A stretch of DNA of 33,345 bases from Lenisia limosa (Eukaryota; Protista; Breviatea): NCBI GenBank assembly GCA_001655205.1, contig LPNZ01002881.1, forward strand, positions 1-33,345, written 5' to 3'. Positions 2,645 to 31,600 of this stretch are shown here, piece after piece; the stretch's first letter is position 1; the number at the start of each line of letters is the position of its first letter. The notes under the pieces were generated by a model. It searched no databases, was not told the DNA's origin, and saw only the letters and a list, made by a program, of their open reading frames with translations. A program made the position numbers and the translations under genes.

Positions 2645-5600
2645 CTAGTTAAGAAATGTCCACAGTCCGCTTCTAAACTGTAAGTCCAAGCAGGAGAGTG
2701 TTGTAATTTTTTATTTAACCAACCCTCAGGACCCGCGGCTGGTGCCGTGCTGCTCGTCGTTCCGCATCGGACATTTTGAAAAGTTGCGTTCGGATGAGTT
2801 CACTCACCAGCCGACTAAAGGTTCAGAAACGAGACAGGCAGGCCGAATCCACCCACATACTGAGTTACTGGTAATCACTAAATATTTGCCATACATTCAT
2901 TTATGGATTCCTTCTTCCCTCCTTTCCCTTGGAAAAATAATGCAAACTCAAGCACAATATATCCTTACCCTCTCTTTGACAGAGAACTCATCACGCTTGG
3001 CTCTCGCTGGGACAATGACTTTTCATCAAAGTCCACAATGATTCGACTGTCTTTCGGGGTGGTTGGAGAAGGCGGGATCGGGACACTGGGGCTTGATGCC
3101 TCGAGTGGGTCTGTATAGTTAACGACAGTGTGATACCTATTGTCCCCCAGATACAGGAAATACCATAGTACCGTTATTTGGAGACCTTCGTTTAAGGGAC
3201 GCGGCTTTGGTTTGACGCCTTGCGGGGACCCGTTCTGGTGCTAAATGGCTAAGGTGAGGACACTGCCAACAGAGAGAACAAGCAACACGAAGGGCATACC
3301 AGGTGGCGTGTTGGCCCGAAGAGATGATACTTGAGGCAATGGAATGCTTTGGAGGACTACTTGGGATCGTGTAGTTGCCTGTGTGTCTTTCATGTCATTT
3401 TTAACTTCACGTTTCATCCTTAGCTTCTCCTCTCTTCTAAGCTGCTTCTTCTTCTCCAACTTTTTCGCTTTAAGCAGCTTTTTCTCACTTTCCAAAAGTC
3501 CATCTTCTTTCTCATCCTTCTCTTTCTTCTTCTTAACTTTCTTTTTCTTCTTTTTCTCAACACTTTCCAAACTTTTCCTTTCTTCTTTTTCAGTAGTCCC
3601 TGCGTTCTTAATCTTCTTCTCAACATTCTTCTTACTTTTTCGCTTTTTACCCAACGACTTCTCCTTCTTTATTCTTTTCTTCTTAACTCTTTCAAAGACA
3701 ACACCTTCGTCAACATCCAGAACATCACCTTTTTCGTCATTTCCATATCCTTCATCACGGACTCGGTGGTGATTCTCTGATTTTTTGCTTGATTCGTATA
3801 TTTTCTGATGGATAGTCGCGAACTTGTCCCTTCTCAACTCGCGTTCACTTTTTCCTAAACGTTGATACTGCTTTGGTACCAAGATATCAGACTGTTCTTC
3901 ATCTGAGTCAACTGTCGCCTTATTAACTACTGATTTTCGAGCTGTCTCTTTCTTTTTGGCACGGACTGAATAATCAACCATTTGAGTGAAAGTTACAGTT
4001 GTGTTATTACCAATATCAACACATATCATATGATATTCATGAGCCAAACCCACAAACCTTCACACGCAACGTTGACTGAAGATTTGTCTTTAAGTGAAAC
4101 CCTGAATAGTCAAAGAGGGAATTCTCCTAAATTAAAAATTTATACTGGGAATAAAAAGATAAAATGGTACATGGCAGAGTTTATCTTCCAAATTTTACAT
4201 TGGATCAATACTCTCGCCGATATCGATATACCAACCTGTTTTCAGGGATCAACGGTATAGGTTGAGACACCCACGATGACGTCATCGGGAAAGAACCTTC
4301 AGATTCGTTAGAGTCCGAAAACTGCAGCGGAATAATGGTGACGTTGGGAGCAAGGGTACCGGGGGCTGATGTGGGGGACAGAGTTTTGGACTTAAATTTC
4401 CTGGCAGGAACATGTGTATACTTCAATGTTCTTGTGAAATTTGGTGGGAGGGGGGAAGTGAGAGAGGGAACAGGAGCAAAGATTGAAGCGGATAACGCTC
4501 TAGGTTTCGGATCTTCGGGTTGAACCACATTGACGATTACTTTCTTAATGATTGAACTGTCCTCAATGTGCAAAGGAGCGGAAGGAAGACCATCAGGCTG
4601 GTTGAGCGAAAGGGCTGGGAACATGCCCGGGCTGCTGGAAACTGGTGGACTAAATTCTTTCAAATCATGGTCCTCCTTGCTATCCGAGAGACTCCCATCC
4701 GATGCATCGCTTCCGTGGTCAACCTGCTCTTCAGTGGGTTCAACATCTTCCTCGTTGGTCGAAGGCACAATGGTACTTGCTTGACTGGCAGAAACCTGCA
4801 GTTCTTGAGAGTTGTCATTGGCTTCTGCACTCCCCTCGTTTTCCTCAGGGACAACTGTTTCTTCCTTCTCTGTTTCTTCCTGGTTTTTCAATTCTTCTAT
4901 CATCTTCATCTCCATTATCTTGTCTTCCTTCCTTCTTTCTTCACCTTCTTTGGTATCATCTTCCTCGTTGGTCGAAGGCACAATGGTACTTGCAGAAACC
5001 TGCAGTTCTTGAGAGCCAATTTGGTCTGCATTGTTATTGGTTTCTGCACTCTCCTCATTTTCCTCAGGGACAACTGTTTCTTCCTTCTCTGTTTCTTCCC
5101 TGTTTTCCAATACTTCTATCTTCTTCATCTCCATTATATTGTCGTCCTTCCTTCTTTCTCCGGTATCATCTTCCTCCCTTTCTTCTTGATTCTTATCATA
5201 AGTTTCCTCCCTTTCTTCCTCTTTCTTTTCTTCTGGTATCTTAATTTCAACTTTCTTATCAACTTCACTTAATTCATCTACTGTAATCCTGTCGCTGCCC
5301 ATCTCTTCTTCGATCTGCATTTCTTCCATTTCTTCTTCCCTTGCTTTCTCACCAAGCAGCCTGTCTCTTTCATTATCTTCATCCAACATCCTCGTCATTG
5401 CATCCAACCTCTTCAACAGTTCTTGACCCTTCTCATCAATTTTCCCAGGACGTTCTTCTCTTTGCTGTTTTTTTTCTTCCTTCCCTTCCCCAGCAACACC
5501 TTTTTCTTCGTCCGGGACAATATCCTCTTCCATCAGCTCTGATTTAAAGGAGTCATCATCGTAAAGCTCAGCGTTAAACGTGAAATCTTCTGATAACAGT

Positions 5601-8600
5601 TTGTCGATCTGTAACTCCGCAAAATCTTTCAATTTCTGAAGCTCTTCAATTGATGGGACCGCTGCTGGGATATTAGGAATACCATCGAGAACAATTTCAC
5701 GATAAGTCCTTGGCTTGGGATATTCTTGAGGAGCAAGGGATCCTTAAGGTATTAGAAAAGAACCGAGTTAGGGAATTAAAGGAAAGCAAAACCACAAACC
5801 GGCTTTTGGAATCTCTTCCAGATCTGGAATAATAGACATCAATCCAACAGCATCATCGTCAAAGTATGCAGACGGCTTGTTTTGGAAGCTGAATCCAATA
5901 AGCAAATCAGTTACTTGAGTGGAGAACGAAAAATCAATAAAAAGTACCAAGAAAACAGACAGTATAATGCTAATACAAATTACAATAGAGATACTAGTCC
6001 AATCCTAATTTCTTGTTGAGTGTAACATGAACCAGCTTAGGGTATAAAACCCCATAATTATCCCTTCTCGCTCACTGCGCTTCGGAGTTGGCAAAGGATA
6101 AGGCAGATTCAGTGAGGAATAGCTTCTCATTGTCCGTATCCTCATCATGGCCTAAATCGTACTCAAGGTCGTCGTCACCGGGCTCTTCAGACTCGATCTC
6201 TTTGTTGATTTCTGCTAGGCGGTCGGAAACTTCATGCTCGTAGCTCTCCAGGTCGGCATCATTCAGGACGAGGGGGCCCAGTCTGCAATGTTAGATGATG
6301 GGGGTAAAAAGGAAATTAACGAAAAGACAACCCACGGTGCAAATGGGAGGCAGATTGAGAAATCTGCTCCATAAGAGTCCAACAAGTAGTTCGCTGACCT
6401 CATTCCAGTGTAAATAGGTTTTTCCAGATCCTGAATAAATGAGCACCAGAATTAACGAATGATAAATGTTAGTCACTCTGACTCAAATCGTCCAAGTTAA
6501 GAATTTTCAACCATTTTACAACTCATGTATTATGAATCCGCGAAGAAAAGAAGAAACAGTTCACTTTTTCATTTTAGAACATATTGAGAGTTATTGTTAG
6601 CAAACCTCTTCAGAACTTACTTCATGCTCCTCCTCCAAAGGCAGGTTTCGCATTCGTTCAACACGGGTGCTGCGAAGACGAGCCAGTGCTTCCCTTTCTG
6701 CATGATGCAAGCCATCCGGCTCATCTTCTGTAGATGACTCGGATGATGACAATCCAATTACGAAATGAGGGGGGGATAGTGGTGCTTTCATTCCAGGTTC
6801 CGTTTTAGGTTCAACTGAGTGTTCCATCCCAGGCACAACCTTTCGTATCTCCATATTTTCCTCTTCCCTTCTTCGTTCTTCCCTTCTTTGTTTTCCCCTT
6901 ATTTGCTCTTCTCTACTTTCCTCTTCCCTTCTTTCCTCTCCCTTTCTTTGTTCTTCCCTTCTTTGTTCATCCTTTCTTTGTTCCCTTCTTTCATCTATCT
7001 TTCTCTGCTTCTCCCTTCTTTCATCTATCTTTCTCTGCTTCTCTCTTCTTAGCTCTATCTTCTTGATATTTTGCTCTTCCTTTTTTATTTTCGTTGTTGA
7101 ATCTTCCTTTCTTTGTACTGGTTTAATTTTGTCCTCCTGAATTGACTGCGAATTCATGTGCTCCGTAACAAGAGATTCCTTGGTAATTGGCTCTGAAGGT
7201 TTCCTGTGGAGTTAGAACCCATTGGGAAAGGCAAACATTAATGAAGGAATGCTATTAACATGCAGTAAATATAATGAAAATGTACAAATGATATGATAAA
7301 CAAGATTTCACCCAATCATTTGCATTCTCTCCAACTGTTATACCCCCCCCCCCTTAGCGAACGACGTATCACATAATCCCACTCACGGAACAATCCAAGT
7401 GTTCAACACTGCTGGAGGCAACCGCTCTCTCTGGGGATACAATTGCAAAGGGGCTGGAATAGATTGTGGAGAACTCCTCTTGATGGTTCCTGGTTTTGCG
7501 GGAATGCTCAACGGAGTACGGCTTATTGTGGACTGCGGCGCACTAGGAAGAGCTGGACTGAGGGGGATATAATTTGGATGAAATGCAGATAACGGGATTT
7601 TGGGTGAAGCCGTCTTCTTGGTCTGATCCTCGTCTCCGAGATACTCATAAAGGGAGGGTCCTTTGTACGACCCCGGGATGTGGTCGTCGTCGTCAGAGGA
7701 TTGACTGGGGCTCGACGACCGGTCCTGGTTTGAAGGAGTCTTTTTGGGGGTTCTGGGCGGAGATGGCACGGCAGGAATGGAGGGAGCAGGGACTGGAAGG
7801 GCCTCCATTGGGCCAATTGTTGGAACTGAAGCTATCAACGTCATAAAATAAGTTACTCAACCGAGGTCAAGAAGTCACGTCATCCTACCAGGAGCAACAA
7901 AGAGGACAGGGGGATCTTTCGTTTGTAAAATTAAATCGTCAACGCTATAGTGTAAGTGTCAACCAAATACACAAAAACCTCAAAGAAGTAAGAAACCAGT
8001 GTAGCCAACAGACCTACAAACAGCATCACATAACGGACAAGTCCATCGGTCCTTGACGGTCATTGGTGACCCATCGTCTCTGCAGACTTGGTGCCTGGAA
8101 GATTAAGTCTAGGATACAAGCTGGTGCACTGCAAGTATTGGTACTCACGTTTTCAAAATGCAGTTAGACTTGACAAAAGTCTCCAGAGAAAAGAACTAAG
8201 AAGTCAAAAAGGTACGTGGTAAATAAACCTATTTGTCACCCCTCCCCCCAACTTCAATGTGGTCGCATTTTGTAGTTTTAAACTTATCTAAACGATTTCA
8301 GTTTCAAGAAAATAAACAGCTTCACAAAACTCGACGTACCTCCAATAAGTCCTGTTTTCTTTTCGATGGACTCAACTATTTCAGCAGTGCTGGGGATAGT
8401 CACTACCAATCCGACGCAGTAGATTGGTTGGGGATATTCCTCTTCAGACTACTGCATTAGAGAACAGAAAATGCTAAATCAGAAGCATGACACAACTGAC
8501 CAAAATCTTCCCAAGGAACAGATTTGTGTTTCCAAGATCCCCCCCCCCTCTAACAATTTTGGCAACCATTTTAACAGGTCCACGGAGGCCAGTTTCGTAT

Positions 8601-12900: not shown

Positions 12901-13106
12901 TGCAGTTACACTCAGCGCTTCTGCTGTTTTTTTGTTTTCTTTATTCCGTTTTTCACAAAAAACTACCAACAACGCGCATGGCGATGGCGTATATACCTTG
13001 GCGATCTTGTCTTGCCACGCATTTCTTTTGCTCTTGGCCCCTTTTTCGACCCCTGGTGCCCGTTGATACCGTTGATGTAATTTGATTGCACTTTGAGGAC
13101 TTTAAT

Positions 13107-16100
13107 ATGTGTGGTGCAGCAACCCAGTTTACAAAGTATTTGTCACTTCCCTTTCTATATCTATTTGTCTTCCTTGCAGCCTCAGTCGTGAGATCTTCTT
13201 CTTACTCCTCAGCTCCTCCCGAGTTCCAAGGTTAGTCCAAAACAGTATTATTCTCCGTGTATAATCGGCAATCTTGTCCTATCCGTAACCACGTCACAGG
13301 ACTTCTGTCCAAATACTCTGCTCTTCTCCCAACAGTACCTTCCACGTTAAATGAAAACCTCATCCCAACCCCCGTTCCTCTCAGGTTCTTGGATTTGGTA
13401 AGCTGGGGGTCAAATTGGTTTCTAAAAGAACCAAAATCCTCACATCTTTTCTCATCATTTTAAAGAAATATCATAATATTCTGGAAATCCGTCCTTAACC
13501 CTTATTATTGTCTGACATTGATACATTAAATATATTCTGACTTTTGACGGTTACAGATTTCAGCCTTGAATTCCACCAGCAAAAGTGATGATGATTCATG
13601 TGACATTTCTAACATTTGGTCGAACAGAGTTGCTGTTGGGCCTTTAGTGCCAAAGGTTTGATTCGGGATTTTCTTGAAGTATCACCTGTAATTAGCCTGA
13701 CCCTGCGGAGTCCTACTGCAGAGTCCAGGCCAGTTCTGGAACACTAAATTTCAAAGTAGGTACCTGGACCATCAGTAAGATAGAAGTTTATGCATCAATA
13801 AATTTATACCTTGCTGCAAAAGGTTTAAACTTGTTACAGGTAAAAGACCTCCCGACCTCCATCCATTCTAAGCCTTCTGCTTACCCATCATGGGCTGTTT
13901 TCAACCATCAGGTTACTGGGGTATTGAACTGGGTTACTGAAACGAAGTACCGTAATGTCATAGTAGGACTTCCCATGTTATTGAGAAGACTGTAAAATAG
14001 CTGTTCATCGGAAATTTGCACCTACACCTTTTCCAGAAAGCCGTTTCACTAATTCAGATTCCTTCCTCTCATGTTGGAGATAAACTATTACTTAAGTTAC
14101 AATGGACCCGCGTTTTTGGAGGGACTGCCTCTGAATGCAATGATGAAGAAAAGGTTTGCACTTATAGTTTGCTCAGTTTCTACTAAACCGGTATAACATG
14201 TCTAGGTTGACGGAGTATGTACTGTTCCCTATATCGGAGATTGGGACCTTGCAACTCCCGCTGGCATTTTACTTTTTTGGGTAGGTTGTTTTTGTTTATT
14301 CATATTGGTTAGAAAGAGCCCCTTTAGTATATGACATGTACATGTGTCTCAAAAAGAAGTTTCAACATGCTGTTTTTTTTTTGTTCAATTTTTAGGGACG
14401 AACAGGAGGATCTAAGTTTGAGCAGATTACTGGACCTCATTCACCCAATCCAGCGCCTTTAACATACAGGTAGTGTCACTAAAATGTTACGTAAGCCAAT
14501 GTTTATCACCTCTATTTCATCTTCTGAATTTAGCTTGTCTTACTATTTAGTGCAATTGCGGAAATTGCCTACCCCATTCCAGAGAGTTTACAACATGTTT
14601 CTAAACTGTCTGTTGCCATTGTTGTCATAAACCAGGTAATATCTGTTAAAACTTGCGTATGCATACAGTACATATGATATATATATATATCTGTAATACA
14701 AACTCTGTCCTCTACCCTTTTTAGTGTCAGTGCTTTTTTTCTCCGTTATTATTCTATTACAGTCACCTGGGGGCTGTGTTGATGGCGCATGTAGCTCAGT
14801 ATCAGGCACAGGGTATTCCTTTAAATTGTTAACCTCAACGTTGATGTCAAGACGGCAGTTCCAACCACCGTATGATGGGTACTATTCTAGATCAGCTTTG
14901 ATCTACGATTTAATTTGTGGATGTGGTGCTGATCATTTAGGATTGAACCAGTTGAAGGGGTTCCGACTCTATTTGGAGGAATTCAAGAAATGGTCAATAA
15001 ACGGTACGCTATATTGTCCTCGACTGATTTTCCAGAGTAGCCTTTGCCAGCCTAAAGTGTCAAACATCACCAGCTACACAAGATTGGGGACACGCATTCA
15101 ATTGGAGGTGAGAGGTCTTCTCACTCTGACTTTACATTTTAGATTGACATTTGACCAGAAGATATACGGCGGGTATAATTGTCCTGCAGCAGCGGACCTC
15201 AATAAAGAAATACCCTCTAACATCCAAGTTAGTGAAATAGGAATACTTTGTTTTTGCTTTTGACATTTCTTTTTGCGAAAGTTTGAACGCGTTCTTTTAT
15301 TCTCGTTACCATTTTGGTAACACCACAGGATCACCCATTATTTTCTCCATACTTTGAGGCAAGCGCTTCGGAATCTTCAACAAAGTAGGATTGCTAATTT
15401 ATTGCCATTATTAACTTCTTTAAAGTAATGCAAATAAAGCATTTTATTAAATCCACGATTCAAGTTCCTTTCAAATTTCACATATTTCAGTACACTAATT
15501 GACCGTTACCTAGATTCGATTCAGCCACTTCAGCACTTTACGTCCTAGCCTTTGAACGAGCCTGTCATGGTGAGCATCTTTTCACAATACACTACATTGG
15601 TTGTTCATTTTCACCAACATACTGTTTAGCGCAAACGTACAATCGTTTTTGGGGCCCCCATTCCAACCTTTTCTAGGCCACTATGGAGTTATAACGCAGA
15701 ATGTCGTAACTGAAAGTGGACTAAGATGTAGATTCACCAGCTCTCAGGTTGGTCATGGACGTTGATTTTTTTGAGACTATTTCGCATGAATAATCTTTTA
15801 GGTGAAGCAAGTTCTTGAGAAAGTGGCAGAAGTAGAGACTGCAAGATACTCGAAATGGACATGGACTCATGGTAGGTTACGGAATTTTCCGGTTTTGCTT
15901 TTTTTGATTGGTATTATGATATGATAGGTTTCTAAACACAAGTATAATTTGGATTTTGATTGTAATACGCGTAGTATGTCTTCACTACACGATCTTACAT
16001 TCAGGCTACTCGGAGTGGGATTTAGGTACTAACCCTCCTGTTCGCTTCTGGGCCCATATGGTGAGACAGGGGAGGGGTGGAGTTCTGGTGGTGCTGACGA

Positions 16101-19100
16101 TAATTTATTCAGCCGCATTCATTACTGATAGCGCAGATTGACGTTATGGGAGACTACATATCCTCAGACCTTTTGGAGACGATATTTGCCGAAATCGACA
16201 CCAGAGCTTTGGATTTCATAAATGCCGCAGATACTAGGTTGGTGTTGGTGGTGTCTCCTTGAGTGTAGTATGTATTTGTCTTTAATGTTTACATGATTTG
16301 TTTCACATTTCTTTTTAAGTAATTTAACATTTTATTTTATTGAAAAAACTATCTCCGCATAGTGATAATTGTCCCCCCTCACGCTTCCATTGATTGATAT
16401 AGATATTGGACGGTGGCCAATGGTAACAATTGGACTCCCATTTTGGTTTGTCAACCAGGAATCACTTGTTAGACTTAATTTTGTTCATATTGATTTAAGC
16501 TGATTAATTGGGTTCTCTTGAATACAAAGTTTTGTATAATAGTTATGCTCATTTTGGGTGAATATTGACATATTCCAGTCGGCGCCTGCCATTTATTGGG
16601 CCGCAGTTTCATGGAATCGCAACCGTGTGCTTGCAACCGAATTGGCCAAAACAGTTTATGAGGTTGGGTGACTATGTGTCCTCTTCAAGAGATGAGAAGG
16701 AACATCATTTTTTGCTGGGCTTGTTTCACCCCTTGTAGGTAGCGTACTGGCATAGGGAGTTTTATGGCCGTGATGGGTCGTATCAAGAAGGCTACAGTTA
16801 CTCCACACATAGTCTGAGAAACATTCTCCATATAAACTCAGTTGCTGGTATGTGCTTTTCTCCAAATTTTCATTTCTTTTTCAAAACACTTAATTCTTCT
16901 AAATTCCTCTCTATTTGATGTATTAGTTGGCAGCTTTGGCCTACCTCTTGATGGCAACGATTGGTCAAGATTCAAATCTTATTCAGACTGGGCTTTGCTT
17001 ATGATGGGGTAGGAATTCTCGTACTGCTTGCTACGTGCTCTTCGTAATAGGCTTTTCACAAACCAGAGCTGATGGGAGAGTGACCAACTTTGCAGATAGC
17101 CATGATAACAATGGTATTTCAGAAGGAGCACTGTTGTATTTGAGAGCACCTGGTATGTAGATACTGTGATGGAGCGGTGTTTTTATTGGCTTAACAGAAC
17201 AGATGTTTACATGTGTCAGCCCTGGATGTTCAAATCTATTGGTAAGCTTAAACTAGTTTAGAATTACTTCTCTTATCGTTTTTCTCTCTCAAACTGTTTA
17301 GACGCTCACCCATCCTCAACATGTCGAGATATTCTAAGAGACGCACCCCCTCTCTTTGAACCTTGTCACACCTCTCAATACTACAGATATAACTGGTCTG
17401 GGGCCAATCTTCGATTGAAAATAAGAAGTACAAAATAGGTAGAATCTACCCTATTAGAGATATTGGATTATTGTAATATACTACAATAATCACACGTATA
17501 TTATATCATATCCTTGTACCTATTTCTTTCATTATCTTTTGATATCATTGCTGACCCTTGGTAGGTTCTCTAAGCCAATTGACTATGTTTGGGCTTTTCC
17601 CACTCTGATGGCAGGTATCAATGAAAACGCTCATCAAGAATGCCAGCAAAGTCTCAATGTTTGTTTATTTTGTTTCCAGGGTACTTTTCTTGATCATTAG
17701 GTTGCATATGATACGTAGATTGTACATCTTACGTTTTCAGGGAGACCCATCCAGCTCATTACATCGACTCAAAAGCATGTTCACCGAATACCTTACTGAT
17801 TCTGTTCTGGACACTACTATCATAAAAGAGATACAGGTTGGCACGAACAAATTTTAGACATATGATATACTATAGTTATGATAAATATACAGCATATTGT
17901 AATGTTTTCAACAAGAATATCCTGATACAGTAGGGTGCCTCGACTGCTGCCACCGCTTTTAAAGGTTTGAGCTTCTCGTCAGTTCTATCTTTCGAGGATT
18001 ATGAACAATATATGATATGTGATTTCAATTTAAAAGGATGATTCTGTTTAGACGGAGGCTATGGTCTCATTTGGATGACTCAAGATAATAGTGCACCTTT
18101 GGAGGTAAGAATATGCTTACACAGGGTATCTTCTGTTGACCCAAATAACCAACAGGGTGAAATAAGAGATCTCTATTCAACCTCCCTTCTTGGAATTAGT
18201 GCTGTTCAAAACAGTCATCCCCATACTGAACTGGACTTTGGAACAGTTTTATGGACTTCTGCAGGTACAAGGCTACTTGAAGAAGCTGGGTGAGTTCATT
18301 CTTTGCCTTCAACCTCTCACTGTCTCAGATATGCATCAATTGGCAAGGATTACTATAGTCAAGACGCTCCTGACCAAAACGCCCTTGGTCATAACACCCT
18401 TGTTGTCAGAAATGCACAATGGCCTTTAGGTGATAACACATCGGAAGCGTCTCAGATCAAGGATATGGTGGACGGGGATAGGAATTTCAATCCTCTTTCA
18501 TAACTTCTTGAGGCCATTTATCAATAGACACAACTTCTCACTTGACCAGGACGGAACTATTGAGGCGACAACGGTATCGGACTTCCCTGTTCTTCACCTG
18601 GATGGCTCTCGTGTCTATGGTAGAGATGTTGATCAGGTATTTTAGTGTAATAGTATGTGTCCATTATTACATTCCAGACGATAAGCCCTGGACTAGGTCA
18701 GCTCCAAAGCATGTTAAGGAGCGTTATGCCAATATCATCTGGCGTATTTGCCATTGTGGACTCATTTGCCTCACGGTAAGCAAAGAGTACGGCAACGAAT
18801 TCAAACATTTCTCTCACATACACCACAGATCTGACAGAGGGGCAGTATTCGTTGACAATTTTTTTCATGCTTTTGACACAACTCCAAAGGTACTGCACGT
18901 GTTGTGTTGAATTTTATATGTATTTCTGTTTGACTTTTGTAGACATCATGTACGTATTACATGAAGAACAACCTTCAAGCAGAAGTATCAGGAAGTATGG
19001 TTTTTTTTATGATGGAATATTGAACGTTGACTCTTCAAAGATTTATTCCACAGATCAAATTTTGATTTCTCCTATGTGTTCACGAATTGAGCGCGTTACT

Positions 19101-21038
19101 GATTCCCTTGTTGGTGCTTCTTCTATTACAGGTTCGGGTGATTTTAGGAGAAATGAAGTGAATGAACCCACTTTATCACTTTGAGCCAACTGTCTGTTTA
19201 GGAGCTTCTATTTCACCAGGTTCATGGAGAGATGATGGAGCGAAAGAGGTGGATACTAAAAATCACAAATTTCTCAAAAGGTTTGACTGGCTTGTTATTT
19301 TATCCTCCTCTGAACCGCCGGATTGATAGCTTCGTAATATACCTATAATATTTATACATGCTAAGCAGGAAATACACTTTTTTTTTTTCCTTTCTGGACT
19401 TGGACAGAGTCCCTCCCGCAGGGTTTCTTTCTAGGTTTGTAACCCCCCCCCCCATATTATTTTTGATCCTGGTCAATCCGTGGTTCTGGGGATAAAACTA
19501 TCTTAAGCCCTCTGCAGAGTAACCTGATACTTCATCGTTTCTTCATCTCCCTTTTTACTTTTTAGATTTGTGTACCAATCTACAACTTCTGAGGTGAGAA
19601 GAGCGTATGGTCCAAGTTAATGTGAAAAGCGTATTTTTAATTTAATGAGATCTCTCTACTCCGTATTTGTTCTCAATAGTTCAGGAAGTTGGTTCTCGCA
19701 TCTTCATCCTTGCTGCCAATAGGTAGGTTCCTACGTGTACATTGCTAATATTACTTACCTACCTTAGAACAGATGTGACTATATCCCGCGCAGACTCGTC
19801 AGGTCCTTTGACTAGAGGTGGACAGAATATCCTTGTTTGGAAGGTGGAGGTTAGCAAGGCCTGGAACTCTTCTTTGCATTTAGTGGTTTCTACTTTCTTT
19901 ATACATAGATAGGCTCTGATGCTTTTTGGCTTGAGGTGAGGCCGATAGGTGACTCCTGGCAAATATTTGCTCTTCATAAGTATGAGGGCTGATAGTATAT
20001 TATATCATATCATATAGTATCTAGAAGAGCCAGAAAAGTGGAATTTCAATATTTCTGTCACCATTGCAATCGGACTTAATTGATTGTCTTAAGGACAATG
20101 CCGGTCACCCCTTGCCATGAATCCTGCCAAACTTGCAGTGTGATAAGTGACTCATCAAAGTGCTTATCATGTCCTCTGAATTCTGCCCTTTCAAACGGCC
20201 ACTGCAATGGTTTGGTTTATCAAATTTAGAAAATCACATTGTAATATTGTGTATCAACCATGAGGGTGGGGTAGGAAATACTATATTGAATGATCACTCA
20301 TTGGGAAATGACTAATTCATTTGACCTGACATATAGCCGTAAAATGCCCCGAGAATTGCAAAGTCTGTTCCACTGCCGGGTGTAACCAATGCAATTACCC
20401 CTATTCATTGAAAGAAAACAGCTGCATATGTGAGGAGGTTTTTTTGTGAATACGAATACAATACCTTTTTGTTGGTTTACAACCTTAGTGAATTGTCATC
20501 CCGGCTGTGAGACATGCTCTGGCCAATGGAGAACGGAATGTCTCAGCTGCTCTGGGAATCTTTCCTTACAACCAGATCACTCTTGTCAGAGGATCGGTAT
20601 GCCCCCTCCCAAAATTGCTCTTATTTGCCCAGAACCCACAAATATTGCGTCGTCTTCTGAGACTCCACAGACATCCGATGAGATTTCTGAAGGCAGCTCC
20701 AGCGGTTCAACAATGCTTATCATCGCCGGAATAATGGGTTGGGTTTGGCTTGCGTTGAATATTTTGGTCATTTCACATTATTGACATTTAACGAATGATC
20801 TTTACGGTTTAGTAATCTCTGGAATTGGACTTTCTGCGGTGTTTGCTCTTCGACAGAAAGGGAAACGTAAGTCGGGATCGTCAAAATATTGAACAAAGTT
20901 GAAGATCTCTACCTTGTTTCAATTCTTTACAGTTCAGGAGGTGTTCAACTGCCAACCAATCGGGGTAGTAAGGACACTACTTTCTCAACAATAACAATGC
21001 CAAGTCCAGTGACTCAGCAGGAGCTCCACACAATATAG
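13107..21038 (+). CDS. Large type I membrane protein: signal peptide, unknown beta-rich region, heparinase II/III-like lyase module, three furin-like Cys-rich repeats, Ser/Thr stalk, TM helix, short tail
   Basis: ATG 13107 MCGAATQFTKYLSLPFLYLFVFLAASVVRS (signal-peptide-like). Many short GT-AG exons can be joined in phase. TM is MLIIAGIM|VISGIGLSAVFAL followed by RQKGK. Tail ends ...QQELHTI* (TAG 21036-21038). The intron 16238-16402 join (ADT R|YWTVANGNNW) is inferred. Confidence 0.8.
15480..18900 (+). other. Heparinase II/III / oligo-alginate-lyase-like domain (alpha/alpha toroid plus beta-sandwich)
   Basis: Ordered motifs: RFWAHMIDVMGDYISSDLLETIFAEIDTRAL (16040-16210); GNNW (16422-16433); DGSYQEGYSY (16772-16801); GADGRVTNFADS (to 17100); NSHPHTELDFGTVLWTSAGTRLLEEAG (from 18210); GHNTLVV (18387-18407). 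These correspond to the NNW, DGxxxEGxxY, NFxDS, HxHxDxG and HNT motifs of Hepar_II_III-containing lyases. Confidence 0.75.
20095..20590 (+). repeat. Three furin-like (CxxC) cysteine-rich repeats, one per exon
   Basis: PCHESCQTCSVISDSSKCLSCPLNSALSNGHCN; KCPENCKVCSTAGCNQCNYPYSLKENSCI; NCHPGCETCSGQWRTECLSCSGNLSLQPDHSCQ. Confidence 0.9.
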
Positions 21039-21672
21039 TGCTAACTTGGTTCTGGTTTAATATGTAGATGTTCATGATCAAATATTAAGTTGTGACTGGG
21101 CTGTGAAAGATATTGAGAGCTTAAAAGCTCAGTGTAAGCGTGTAGCCGATGGGTTCGTAAATCAGAAGGTTGCAAGCAAGTGATTTGATGAATTGATGAA
21201 TGAAATGATTATGAATTGTGAAATGGGGCAGGGGGGGGGGGNNNNNNNNNNNNNNNNNNNNNNNNNNNNNNNNNNNNNNNNNNNNNNNNNNNNNNNNNNN
21301 NNNNNNNNNNNNNNNNNNNNNNNNTTGACCCTTTTCCCTCTTCTTGTAGTTATGAGAAACATTGATGAAACAATTGAAACATTAGTCGAATAAAAATAAC
21401 AAAGTAGTCCAAAAAGAAGGTATCGCCAGGAGAATGCCAATCTGTCCACCATCCATAAGAGATAGTTAATTCATCAAGACGTATACGCTGATACAGAGTG
21501 GGTAGTGGTCATGGCGAGCTGATGGAAAGTGTGGATAATGATTTAAAAATTATTTATGAGCTTTCACATTTGATGTATCGTATCTCCTAACATATCATAT
21601 CTTATTCTATTATTTTTTTGAAAAATCATAATTCTGACCCATTAACTCCCTGCTCTCTCACACACTTAGAAC

Positions 21673-26562: not shown

Positions 26563-28546
26563 ATGAGTATAATACCGTCTCCATTCGCAATTCTAACGTG
26601 CTTCAATGCCGAGGTAGGTGGTGGCTTATTATTCAAAGAGACGAAATATATTAGTTAAATTTACACTCCTCCTAGATCGTGTCCCTCTTATGGCTCCCTC
26701 AAGGTACTCCCCATAATCCAGCAGAAGACAAAAGAAGCACAGGTTTGGTTAGTTACTGAAAAATACTATCTGTTGCAGACTGTTCAATTTCGCAACCATT
26801 TTTACTTTGTGTTTCGTTGGATTTTTATTTCTACCCAGTTCGAATACAACGAGTAGGTCGCTTTCAAACACATAGCAGTCAATGTGTCTACCTCATATTC
26901 TTATTTACTTCAGTTGCTGATGGTCAAATAGAAGAAGCCTTGAGCGTATCACAAGGCGCCATTAATGAAACATCCAACAACGATCTCGCCTTTCTCTCTT
27001 CATGTTTGTCTGACTCGAAAAACCCTCCCCATTTAGTAAGCTCAATTTTTTTTTTTTTTTCATGGGATTATATTTTTTCCAAACCTACCATAAACTTACC
27101 TATTTTTGGCGACTGGAGGATCAGATGGATCCATTTCCATTTGGAGTCTAATGCTGAGGCGTCCAATTGTGACCTGGAATGGCCACAAAGAAAGGTGAGT
27201 TCCCCCATGTAATCGTGTTATTTTTTTCACCACCTAGAACAATTGGTCTCTTTATTGACAAAAAAACAAAGCGCTTTTTTACGTAAGATTTAGACAAATT
27301 GCCTTAATTCAGATTCTGACCCCCTTTGAAGGTCAGATCGTACAGGGCATATTTGCGAATGGAAACTCCCACCGTTAGCGCTATCTTCACATTACCCACT
27401 TGATACACAACCAATACTTGTTAATGAAGTTCGAGCCCAAGTCACAACGTTCACGGCTCCCGCGTTCTACTCAACAAAGTTAGTGCTGAAGGGTATTTAT
27501 TTTTTACTGAGAGTGTCGTTCCTCGGGCCTATCAATGATACTGACCATATGTGACGTTTTAGAGACAGGTGTCCGACAATTTTGGCTGCTTTACCAGACC
27601 AAGAGGGGTCAAATGTAAAGAAGGTGGATTCAGTCCCTAATCTTTTTAGATTGTAGTATTTAATATGGACACTGGGCAGCCTGTTTCATGCCTTTATTCA
27701 CAATACAATGATTATGGTTGGTTTACTTTTTTCACTCAGTGTTTCAGGAATGGTCATGTCAATACAGTTCACCACTGTCGGCTCTAATGTTCGACTACTG
27801 GCAGTGTATGAGTCAGGGGCGGTGCGAATGTTTGACCTTGCATCTACTGCAGATATTCAAACCATCCAGGCTATGCCAGATCATGGTTGGTGTAAAACTA
27901 CTTGCGTATATTCCAATTTGCATGTTGTGAACTTGTTCATGTACCAGGACTGTGTTTGGCGTTGCAGGATTCAGTTCTTGCTGTTGGTGGTAATGACTCA
28001 ACAATTGCCTTTTTAAAGATTAACAAAGCAGGGGTATGGCGGTTTTGTCTCACAGTAGTCTTTGAAAGTTTGTAGTCGAACAGCAATCAGGCGAGATGGT
28101 TCATCACAGTTGGCACTCCGACCAGTTGATTGTAAATTTGTTGCTGTTGCAGCGTGGGATTCACGGTACGCCGGACTGAATTGTTCCTTATGTTGCTGAT
28201 ATCAAAATCTTTTTAGAGTATTTGAACTTGAGTTTTTCACTAGTCATATTACATACATGTACTATATTGCTGAACAAATTGTCACAATTATCTATTACTA
28301 GATTACGTATCATTGAAGTTCGGACCGGAAAGGAAGTTGCCACATTGGTCGGCCATAAGGACGCTGTTACTGCCTCCGCCTGGTCTTCTCAACCAGTACG
28401 CTTCCGGGCTTTTCTTTTAGCCAGGACACCGAGGCCTTCTAACCCTTAAGTATCACCTGTTGGCATCTGCCGGGAGGGACAATCGACTGCTTCTTTGGAA
28501 TATCTGCAATGAAGGAAGCTTTGCACCAAAGCCCAAATGTACTTAA
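26563..28546 (+). CDS. WD40-repeat protein, GNB1L/ASA1-like
   Basis: MSIIPSPFAILTCFNAEIVSLLWL; LATGGSDGSISIWSLMLRRPIVTWNGH; GMVMSIQF...LLAVYESGAVRMFDL; AVAAWDSR|LRIIEVRTGKEVATLVGHKDAV; LLASAGRDNRLLLWNI. This follows the GNB1L pattern (PxPxFVLR; IWSLxxRR; GMPM...AGYEDG; ATAGWDxRIR). Stop 28544-28546. Confidence 0.8.
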
Positions 28547-28683: not shown

Positions 28684-31600
28684 TCAAAACTCTTCATCAT
28701 CGCGGAATAGGTCTGCGATCCAGGAACCTGCTCTGTCAACTTCTTGCTTCGCCCTTGGCACCTGTGGGAATGAATAATATACAATTCGAAACAGACATTG
28801 GAAATAAATGAGGGGGAGCTACAATTATAACTTGGCCAACTGCAGCGAATATATTGAGGAAGCCGTGCGGGAGTTGGTCAGCCATGTGCACTCGGACTGT
28901 TCGCTGCTGCAAACGCTCCAAGCGCCTGAATTGTTAGCATGCGAAGGGTAAGTAGCAAATGATAAAGTCAGGAGTATTCCTGTACACTCACATGCGAATA
29001 TAAATCCCTCACTTTGCGAATCGAACACCATCGTCAACTAAGGGATCATACATGGCACACAGGACTCGGGTTTTGGGGAAATGTGACAGGACAGTGTCAC
29101 TACAGAAGAAAGGCGAGAGAAGAGGATCAGAGTAATCTTGGCCCTGCGGGGTGCGTAAAGGATTAAAAGCATTAACGTTGCTAAAAGAAGCATGGTATCC
29201 CTTACATCTTCCATGTACGCAGACATGCACAAGTTCAAGAAGGGGTAATTCACAATGATATCACGAGAATTAATGATTCGTCCTGCTGAAACGTGTTTTG
29301 AAAGGGCCAAGGCTGGGTACACTAGAAGTAAAGCATCAGGCTTTTGGACGTTGTTTTCAATACACTAAAAAGTCAAAAACAATTATAGTACTTAGCCACA
29401 CTGACCTGTAGGCATAATGAAGCCACTAAATTACCACCAGCAGAATCTCCAACAGCAACCACTTTATGAATCTTGACTGGGAAACTGGGTGAACTAAAAA
29501 GATGAAGGTAATATCATTGAACTCAAAAACTGTCAAGTATAATAAACGCAAAAAATAATTCAAAATACCGAAGTAGCTTGAAAACTCTGAAGATTTCGAG
29601 GGGCTGAGTGGGGAAGGTTTTTTCCGGGGCCATCTGAGTGAGTGTTAAAACCATCACCATCTGGCTATGATCTTTCAAAGTCTCACTATTATTATGAGTC
29701 TGAAAAAAAAGAAGATAAAATACTTATGTAACTACCTGTCCTCACCTGATACTCCACTGAAATGAGAATAGCGTTGCTGTTTTGTTTAGTCCATCTTCTC
29801 AGGTAGCACTGGCCAATTAATATTGGAAACAAAAAAACAAAACAAAATTACTAGTCAGTAAATGGAGAGGGTGTCTGATGGAAACTTTGGACAAGACAAG
29901 AGGGGATGAGAATAACCACTCCTCCACAGACCTGATGGGAGTCAACACTCATTGAAAGGAACCCTCCACCATGAACGTGGAAGATGATGTCCACTCCATC
30001 ATCATCATCATCATCGGCTAAAAGGTCACCTAAGAAGGAGGACGCACCTTTTGAAAGTGTTTCTTCGGAGGGGCTTATTGGGTCCACTAATGATAGCGAC
30101 CTGATGGGTAAGCTACATCAAGATGAAGCTGTTAATATAAGCAGAGTTGTACGTAACATAGAGAACATCTCGCAATCTGAGAGCAACTGGAAATCCCTTC
30201 AACCTTGCACTTTGAAGAGTTGAAGAGGTTGCTCGCCTTGCACATCCTAGTCAGTAAATACTCGTTCATAATAATAATATCATCCGAGTTAGTTAACATC
30301 ATTGTTAATGCCCATACTGTCAGTGAATGGAGGAGGCATTTCGAGCCCGTCGTGGCTTGTCAGTTTCTTGAAGAACTCATGCAACGCCTTGAGTCATGAA
30401 AGAAAAACGGGAGTGTACAACTACCTTTGGTATTTTGTGTCGAGACATAACTCGAATCTTGGTCTCGCAACCTTGGAGGGTAAGCACAGCAAAATTCTGT
30501 TTGAGTTTCCCTCAAAACAAACCAAAAAGGGGGTGATCTTGGGGAACATCAGCAGGTGGGAAGGAAAATTCAACATTGGATTCTGAAACAATTACAGCGG
30601 CTCAATTGCTGGGAAATTGGATTTCATATGGGGTAGAAGAACTCCAAAATTATTGGACCCTACCCAAAGAAGGCATGAAGAGAGGGTTCAAGGGAGAGAA
30701 TGTTTTGATCATTTTGTTGTCAGGAAGATTCCATAAGTACTGAGCGTAGCCCATTGGCATTTCACTGCTGATTTCCTCAAGCTAATTTTGTTATTTGGGG
30801 TTACCATAGCAGTCTCTTACTTTTTTCTTCGTTGCTTTTGGGCGCACAAAAGCTTTGACAGCGCCTGCCATACTCTGAAAAGTTCATATCAGAATGGCGT
30901 TATTTTTGCTTATCTTCGTTCACACAATCGTCCTCCATACCTTGATCAATTTAATTGGCCCGGGCTCCATGTCCCAAGTATCGTAAGTGGCTGCGGAGAC
31001 AACTTCAATTTGCCGGCGGAACATTCGCAGACCCAAGCCTGACTGTGCAATATGACATTAGACAGGTGGAATGGTTACAAATATATTTTTTCTGAACAAA
31101 GCTCTAAAGATGATATCAGAAGAAAGTCAAAGACTTATTCACCTAATTACAACTCACCTGCTTATACCAGTATGGCTGAAGGTTCATTGTTGCAATGAGA
31201 GACTCGGTCATTCCAGAGAGTTCTTCAGAGGGGATACAAGGGTCCCACGGGGGGCTGCAGATAGAGAGGAGGGCAATTTCATTGAACATTTCACAACGTT
31301 TCAAGTACGTCTACATAAGTAAGCTGAAAATGGCATCAATAGTGGTAAAATATGTATATTATTACTCAAAGACTATCGCATCATGCCCAAACTTTAAGCT
31401 TCGTGTTGACTCGGCGTGATGGAGTGTCATAATGTAGCCGATTGGTCTTTGTGGAGTATGAGAAGTTTCTCTTAATGTACTTCAGAATCTTGTTCATAAG
31501 CTTATCGACAAGGAAAATAATAGTGGCCCATCCGCCTTCTGCCGGTGGTGCTGCCATCATCACGTGGTCTGCTAGGTTTGGACACATCTAAAATTGTGAA

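Follow-up and report, generated by a model that had tools for sequence, protein, structure and literature searches.

The window analysed here, the whole 33,345-nucleotide (nt) stretch of contig LPNZ01002881.1, is eukaryotic DNA of ~40% G+C with short exons and scaffold gaps. Its plus strand carries, between positions 13107 and 21038, one expressed, intron-rich eukaryotic gene, whose predicted product carries a polysaccharide lyase module of heparinase II/III type on a membrane-anchored stalk rich in cysteines. The rebuilt GT–AG path runs in frame and without stops from an ATG at 13107 to a TAG at 21036–21038, end points identical to those of the initial annotation of this DNA, and comprises 45 exons encoding 1201 residues. 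All introns of the path are ordinary GT–AG introns of 36–548 nt. Their density is very high, with ~44 introns per 3.6 kilobases of coding sequence, and most measure 36–165 nt. A first, codon-based chaining of exons was discarded because it over-split the gene, and an Rfam scan of the window returned no match.

Transcript data come from two runs of one 2016 study, of which one, with 99% of the sampled words, is the DNA reference and the second is a polyA 'metatranscriptomic' RNA run; four RNA contigs were compared with the window over 15100–21099. Thirteen introns between 18290 and 20937 are spliced out in contigs of the polyA run, all of them GT–AG and 36–127 nt long. Their joints set the frame of translation from the exon with HPH (18156–18289) to 19131 and then from 19680 to the stop. 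A single 731-nt contig unites exons 19768–19849 and 19909–19979 with three six-cysteine repeats, a Ser/Thr-rich linker, one transmembrane (TM) helix and a short tail, which places on one spliced RNA the whole anchoring part that the initial annotation had described as furin-like repeats, stalk, helix and tail. A shorter RNA contig connects 19680–19722 to 19768. The 36-nt intron at 20597–20632, which would read through as stalk if left unspliced, is spliced out in the RNA. Bacterial contamination is ruled out, since the transcripts are spliced and polyA-selected. The in-phase spliced path claimed at the outset could thus be rebuilt, with 13 of its introns supported by RNA; its first part, 13107–15513, is an ab initio prediction, and RNA contigs reach neither 17153–18051 nor across the 19131/19680 junction.

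The 5′ third places 13 ab initio exons in frame between the start ATG and the lyase exons. Exon 1 encodes a signal-peptide-like start, composed of a basic residue, an 18-residue hydrophobic run and then RSSS, while the other twelve (13336–15384) were obtained with a dynamic programme that scores codons and splice sites and have provisional boundaries. The path scores 115.4, compared with 19.8 ± 10.5 (maximum 40.7) for block shuffles, and a fraction of 0.10 of the sampled words of 13050–15400 is present in the polyA run. The frame is also kept when the three exons of 14763–15227 are skipped. Ahead of the alignable lyase core lie ~300 residues in which Pfam gave no match and no domain was recognised. 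The same region holds, at 14697–15260 on the plus strand, a 188-codon stop-free frame with no Pfam match. Its Atlas features resemble those of unnamed animal clusters, some with GIY-YIG or HTH_animal domains (score 0.90, a weak likeness), and a decayed GIY-YIG-like motif is visible by eye; this frame may be a transposon relic within an intron.

Homology of the lyase module

Five motifs, NNW, DGSYQEGYSY, NFADS, HPHTELDFG and GHNT, succeed one another on the plus strand, each within a single exon, and a check of the sequence found the motifs named in the initial annotation at the place, strand and order given there. The string reported as HPH..D.G is present, its actual reading being H-P-H-T-E-L-D-F-G; set against the family pattern H-x-H-x-D, however, it reads H-x-H-x-E.

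Relatives were gathered by scanning bacterial and archaeal genomes for N-N-W followed, after a gap of 38–48 residues, by D-G-x3-E-G-x2-Y. At least 120 loci matched, compared with ~35 expected by our own estimate; among the matches listed, nearly all lie in open reading frames (ORFs) of 550–680 residues, with a sharp mode of the W-to-D gap at 42–43 residues. PF07940 was present in all eight ORFs tested, and DUF4962 in two of these. The relatives fall into two groups, one PL35-like (8KHV, 8KHW) and one PL33-like (8R6Z, 8R70, 8R73), and a custom profile was built from 76 full-length bacterial PL33/PL35 proteins.

Of the 1989 frames on the two strands of the window, the six that score best with this 76-member profile include five collinear open frames of the gene. 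The spliced model scores 57–70 bits (E 1e-20 to 1e-23), including an unbroken domain of 56.8 bits over six predicted exons (16113–17152). The W-to-D gap of the model is 43 residues and falls at the family mode, which lends independent support to the splice sites of 16113–17152. Because the family had been picked with the gene's own motifs, a motif-preserving control was run: the real sequence scores 64.1 bits, compared with −2.4 ± 4.6 (maximum 10.9) for 300 shuffles in which eight motif residues were held fixed. The NFADS motif played no part in the selection of the family. Profile–profile alignment with hhalign covers 502 columns end to end (98.2% probability, E 3.9e-14), and the C-domain taken alone scores 40.6, compared with 13.0 ± 1.9 for shuffles. 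Judged by these comparisons, the lyase part is a true homologue of the Hepar_II_III_C superfamily, in agreement with the Hepar_II_III-type module first proposed.

The two cluster profiles give closely similar scores, 36.4 bits for the PL35-like and 36.5 bits for the PL33-like group, whereas members score more than 250 bits to each other. On these scores the protein falls outside both PL33 and PL35 proper. Its nearest detectable families are these two, NNW-type lyases that act on gellan and on glycosaminoglycans containing GlcA, and not PL15/17/21. The original comparison with PL12/15/17/21-related proteins holds for the Hepar_II_III superfamily and gives way to PL33 and PL35 as closest relatives.

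The only public protein record of the gene, P0001, is a 163-residue prokaryote-style ORF call at 18014–18505, from metagenome contig NODE_94 of ENA ERZ3820729. It reads through two introns and takes the TGA at 18291–18293 as Trp; an altered genetic code was rejected as an explanation, the TGA lying within an RNA-proven intron, and the record is simply a mis-call. Language-model features of P0001 point to the same superfamily, with PF07940 in 88 of 100 matches (score 0.94), and the Atlas structure model of this fragment is poor (predicted local distance difference test, pLDDT, 0.44). As a query, P0001 found nothing in a protein homologue search, in plasmids (tblastn), in genomes or in metagenomes. 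A phmmer search with a 78-residue two-exon stretch against 1.84 billion representatives returned only P0001 and one repetitive false match, an Atlas search with the same piece was uninformative, and an exact scan of Joint Genome Institute (JGI) metagenomes for DGSYQEGYSY gave no match. The public collections searched yielded no close relative.

In the four N-terminal toroid exons, G-L-R-C-R-F and W-T-H align to the family substrate-binding residues G-N-R-x-R-Y and W-x-x-P-A-H, within a low-confidence stretch of the hhalign alignment. An alternative reading, TLIDRYLDSIQPLQHF at 15491–15541, was rejected, as no in-frame splice path leaves it. Between the toroid and the β-domain, 17153–18051 admits 426 alternative in-frame GT–AG chains and has no RNA contig; choosing among them by profile failed, since all 426 score 58–70 bits, and the working model is ~50 residues longer there than the bacterial family. 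The 51-nt intron 18105–18155 is in frame and stop-free and was placed from splice sites only, and the 41-nt intron 18637–18677 was picked among in-frame options; the remaining joints of the β-domain (18468–18549, 18776–18828, 18890–18942 and 18995–19053) are RNA joints. Exons 19680–19979 probably supply the last strands of the β-sandwich. Without them, the alignment stops ~39 columns short of the end of the 240-column template of the bacterial C-domain.

Active-site residues and the nature of the reaction

Catalysis by the PL35 enzyme GAGase II depends on Asn192 (with Asn191), Tyr246 and His401, and its Mn2+ ligands His403, Asp405, Asp421 and His457 are all required for activity (PMC12088678). 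The corresponding residues of BtPL33HA are N238, the charge neutraliser, Y291 and H444, with W239 forming part of the sugar platform (PMC11848413). In the protein described here, the Asn pair of N-G-N-N-W aligns with Asn191/Asn192 and with N238, and the Trp that follows aligns with W239; the last Tyr of DGSYQEGYSY aligns with Tyr246 and Y291, and the first His of HPH with His401 and H444. The distance from Asn to Tyr is 54 residues, equal to that in GAGase II. All 76 relatives share the N-N-W, D-G-x3-E-G-x2-Y and first-His columns without variation, and the present protein matches them. The second His and the Glu of the HPH motif align with the metal ligands His403 and Asp405, and the His of GHNT with His457. 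Overall, the metal-ligand positions read His, Glu, Glu, His, with loop lengths that differ from those of the relatives. A G-x-R and a His also align with family substrate-binding positions in hhalign.

The residue next to the Asn bears on the type of reaction, and here it is Trp, as in PL33 and PL35. The animal dermatan-sulfate (DS) epimerases DS-epi1 and DS-epi2 (DSE, DSEL), which have a luminal domain and a C-terminal membrane anchor, carry a His in this place. That residue, His205 of DS-epi1, adjoins the Asn and is presumably the counterpart of the extra His base of the iduronate lyases. Lyases acting on L-iduronate use this extra His as base (PL15 H311, PL21 H202; PMC11848413), and the resulting N-H base of PL15 and PL21 is absent here. 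Trp instead of His favours PL33/PL35-style syn-elimination on glucuronate-type units and speaks against an epimerase. We therefore regard it as highly improbable that the protein is a uronate C5-epimerase akin to the animal enzymes and modifies a polymer of the cell itself. What speaks for such a function, besides the C-terminal anchor, is that DS-epi1, likewise eukaryotic, resembles these lyases in its fold, in having the catalytic Tyr and in its structural metal (PMC11848413). The DS-epimerases, which are not lyases, lack furin-like repeats, and fragment searches with the present protein reached no sequence match to them, a phmmer search of the PDB with fragments matching no solved chain at E ≤ 10.

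Stalk, membrane anchor and the 548-nt intron

Downstream of the lyase exons, the RNA-confirmed translation contains a regular six-cysteine spacing in three tandem units, one unit per exon, placed as a stalk before the TM helix. Tandem C-x3-C-x2-C-xn-C-x2-C-xn-C units of this kind are also found in furin-like and growth-factor-receptor cysteine-rich repeats and in the CXXC repeats of protist surface proteins. The furin-like assignment is made here by cysteine spacing only: at E ≤ 1, the open frames holding each repeat matched no Pfam family, a weak test as it used single units. The Kyte–Doolittle mean over 19 residues reaches 2.4 at the TM helix, with no second such peak in the protein, and the helix is followed by a stop-transfer sequence, RQKGKR, both being confirmed by RNA. 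The exons of repeat 2, of repeat 3, of the linker with the first half of the helix and of its second half are all phase 1-1 (93, 108, 105 and 54 nt, respectively), and this run, 20337–20866, shows the pattern typical of shuffled extracellular modules.

This anchoring part is separated from the bulk of the lyase exons by the longest intron of the gene. RNA contigs end a few bases from the exon edges at 19131 and 19680 and none enters the intron. At 19300–19499 the DNA contigs break and the depth of DNA reads increases from 34 to 131. The depth jump and the contig breaks point to a multi-copy repeat inside the intron, and this repeat accounts for its length. At 19300–19520 a poly-C tract lies within the multi-copy repeat, of which the window holds no second copy. 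An extra exon pair (19202–19281 with 19566–19593) was considered and rejected on account of an in-frame TGA in its second exon.

An arrangement as two genes, with a secreted lyase ending near 19184 (read-through from 19132 meets a stop at 19182–19184) and a separate gene for a small cysteine-rich membrane protein, appears improbable. It would agree with the lack of any RNA contig bridging 19131 to 19680, with exons 19680–19979 adding nothing to the homology score and with the length of the bacterial domain, which, counted from the HNT motif, is about that of the sequence up to 19131. However, the junction is GT–AG and in phase, the RNA contigs halt at both exon edges instead of running into the intron, and the bacterial template still needs ~39 columns past 19131. 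Moreover, stops and the absence of an ATG in the frame upstream of 19680 prevent the repeat and TM part from beginning a protein at that point, and a second gene would have no signal peptide; the length of the intron, finally, is explained by the repeat. The single gene is thus the preferred model. Of the two findings that the initial annotation had named as speaking against it, separate transcripts and a lack of profile similarity, neither was made: similarity to Hepar_II_III lyases was found, and no separate-gene transcripts were.

Table 1. Features of the gene at 13107–21038, with the evidence for each
Feature	Position	Strand	Evidence or remark
Exon 1	13107–13230	+	First ATG of its open frame; donor GT at 13231; ab initio join only
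Ab initio exons	13336–13397, 13557–13655, 13729–13755, 13840–13962	+	Codon and splice-site dynamic programme
Ab initio exons	14037–14153, 14206–14280, 14396–14469, 14551–14635	+	Codon and splice-site dynamic programme
Ab initio exons	14763–14812, 15036–15107, 15143–15227, 15329–15384	+	Codon and splice-site dynamic programme
Four N-terminal toroid exons	15514–15569, 15677–15747, 15802–15871, 16005–16060	+	GT–AG, in phase; no RNA contig
Toroid exon	16113–16237	+	Within 56.8-bit hidden Markov model (HMM) domain, profile positions 170–334
N-G-N-N-W exon	16403–16445	+	Family alignment
Toroid exon between NNW and DG motifs	16579–16662	+	Yields 43-residue W-to-D gap
DGSYQEGYSY exon	16739–16847	+	Family alignment
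Toroid exon	16927–17008	+	Within 56.8-bit HMM domain
NFADS exon	17067–17152	+	Aligned to family v-N-F-A-D-a-s
Linker between toroid and β-domain	17153–18051	+	Working exons 17203–17241, 17302–17395, 17701–17836, 17934–17964
β-sandwich start exon, D-G-G-Y-G-L-I-W...	18052–18104	+	GT–AG sites
S-H-P-H-T-E exon	18156–18289	+	RNA contig over 18185–18289 and splice to 18329
GHNT exon	18329–18467	+	RNA contig, both junctions
Six β-sandwich exons	18550–19131 (coordinates listed: 18550–18636, 18678–18775, 18829–18889, 18943–18994, 19054–19131)	+	RNA joints
548-nt intron, longest of gene	19132–19679	.	GT–AG; direct join keeps frame (G + TT = Val)
Three exons, probably last β-sandwich strands	19680–19722, 19768–19849, 19909–19979	+	RNA joints 19723–19767, 19850–19908, 19980–20093
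Cysteine-rich repeat 1, C-x3-C-x2-C-x8-C-x2-C-x10-C	20094–20209	+	RNA contig, translation
Cysteine-rich repeat 2, C-x3-C-x2-C-x4-C-x2-C-x11-C, phase 1-1	20337–20429	+	RNA contig, translation
Cysteine-rich repeat 3, C-x3-C-x2-C-x7-C-x2-C-x11-C, phase 1-1	20489–20596	+	RNA contig, translation
Ser/Thr-rich linker (~26 residues, half Ser/Thr) and first half of TM helix	20633–20737	+	RNA joints 20597–20632, 20738–20812
Second half of TM helix, then R-Q-K-G-K-R	20813–20866	+	RNA
Cytoplasmic tail (38 residues) and stop TAG 21036–21038	20938–21038	+	RNA contig to 21029

Elsewhere in the window, WD40-like exons lie at 27650–28450 on the plus strand, and exons of an α/β hydrolase with an H-G-G-G motif, of the hormone-sensitive-lipase or arylacetamide-deacetylase type, at 29000–30200 on the minus strand. 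The minus strand also carries, at 3244–7856, long acidic, lysine-rich open frames of low complexity, with a 15-nt tandem array at 6839–7060 and a 129-nt duplication at 4812–5159.

The proposed protein and its relation to known systems

Taken together, the gene probably encodes a type I membrane protein with a lyase module near PL33 and PL35, which would face outward or into a phagosome or endosome and cleave uronate polymers. From its N terminus, the chain would comprise a signal peptide, ~300 residues without a recognised domain, the lyase module, with an (α/α) toroid followed by a β-sandwich bearing a metal site, three furin-like repeats, the Ser/Thr linker, the TM helix and the 38-residue tail. 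The module is predicted to bind a polysaccharide with β-linked uronate, most probably of the glucuronate type, the candidates being capsules and slimes of bacteria that resemble hyaluronan, chondroitin, heparosan, gellan or alginate, and to cut the chain by β-elimination. Charge neutralisation at the carboxylate would fall to the two Asn of NNW. The Tyr of DGSYQEGYSY, once activated by the first His in HPH, would take the proton from C5 and donate one to the leaving group, as is known from PL33 and PL35. This combination of a lyase with cysteine-rich repeats and a membrane anchor was found in no described protein.

Several observations weigh against this reading. Only the ab initio path connects the signal peptide with the lyase exons, 15100–18184 is without any RNA contig among the four compared, the 19131/19680 junction is likewise unbridged, and exons 19680–19979 have no homology signal of their own. 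PF07940 was not matched by Pfam searches with single open frames or with P0001, even at E ≤ 10, in tests that used fragments only, and phmmer searches of the PDB with two exons and with P0001 reached no solved chain at that threshold; the Pfam check proposed by the initial annotation thus gave no match on fragments, while the similarity it was meant to reveal appeared with the custom profile and hhalign. Identity to any PL33 or PL35 member is 21% at most. In the metal site, Glu takes the position of Asp405, which is invariant in all 76 members, L-L-E-E-A-G puts a second Glu at the position of Asp421, and the segment from this Glu to the HNT histidine is ~13 residues shorter than in a PL35-like reference ORF (23 versus 36). 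Nor does the protein clearly retain the clamp residues Y470 and F475 of PL33 (PMC11848413).

The deviations in the metal site and the clamp would fit a non-cleaving receptor or lectin on a lyase fold, which would bind uronate-rich polymers on bacteria or matrix and use its tail for signalling, adhesion or uptake. Ala mutants of the metal ligands concerned inactivate GAGase II (PMC12088678), and the layout of stalk, TM helix and tail is receptor-like. Nevertheless, the Asn pair, the Tyr and the His all stand at exact family spacing, which would be unexpected after loss of catalysis, the change from Asp to Glu retains a carboxylate, and the tail has no recognisable signalling domain; we consider such a receptor unlikely. 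More tenable, although still tentative, is a digestive role away from the cell surface, with the lyase seated in the phagosome or lysosome membrane of a cell that feeds on bacteria. The topology would be the same either way and a lyase directed against prey capsules would be useful in a food vacuole, but no recognisable sorting motif occurs in the tail.

Among known systems, PL35 (GAGase II of Spirosoma fluviale, 8KHV, and GAGase VII, 8KHW) is collinear by profile through toroid and β-sandwich and is alike in N-N-W, D-G-x3-E-G-x2-Y and H-x-H, in the Asn-to-Tyr distance of 54 and in the metal pattern His, acid, acid, His (PMC12088678). The present protein is set apart from it by a score of 36 bits with ≤21% identity, the replacement of Asp405 and Asp421 by Glu, a metal loop ~13 residues shorter, the extra ~300 N-terminal residues, furin-like repeats, TM helix and tail, and a eukaryotic gene with ~44 introns. 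PL33 (BtPL33HA/BT4410 and relatives; 8R6Z, 8R70–73, 8R75) is equally near at 36 bits and shares the N238/Y291/H444 triad, the Trp platform residue after the Asn and the G-x-R and His substrate-binding positions (PMC11848413). In contrast, the protein described here does not clearly keep the clamp pair, has no family-level match and is membrane-anchored and eukaryotic. The PF07940 and PF16332 (DUF4962) proteins (PL12, PL15, PL17, PL21 and PL39) form the wider superfamily of bacterial relatives, towards which the features of P0001 point.

Polysaccharide lyases of the heparinase II/III fold have been described as bacterial tools, and the PL33 study tallied its sequences by bacterial phylum only. 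To our knowledge, animals degrade glycosaminoglycans with hydrolases and have kept this fold only as epimerases. If the protein is active, a full catalytic triad borne by a cysteine-rich stalk and turned towards bacteria or matrix from the membrane of the eukaryote itself would represent a different deployment of a lyase. This makes testable the idea that protists which feed by phagocytosis or bear epibionts use lyases to digest or sense the capsules of bacteria, as well as an old gene transfer from bacteria and the relation of the lyase fold to the animal DS-epimerases. Prokaryote-style gene calls on contigs of this kind hide such a protein entirely. That a eukaryotic lineage took up a bacterial-type uronan/glycosaminoglycan lyase, in which introns then accumulated, and that the gene multiplied into a set of stalked, anchored ecto-enzymes or receptors serving to recognise, retain or strip the capsules of bacteria, whether partners or prey, is a distinctly doubtful scenario at present. 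If the gene belongs to an Obazoan protist, for instance a breviate, this family could also represent a membrane-bound lyase-fold protein ancestral to the animal DS-epimerases.

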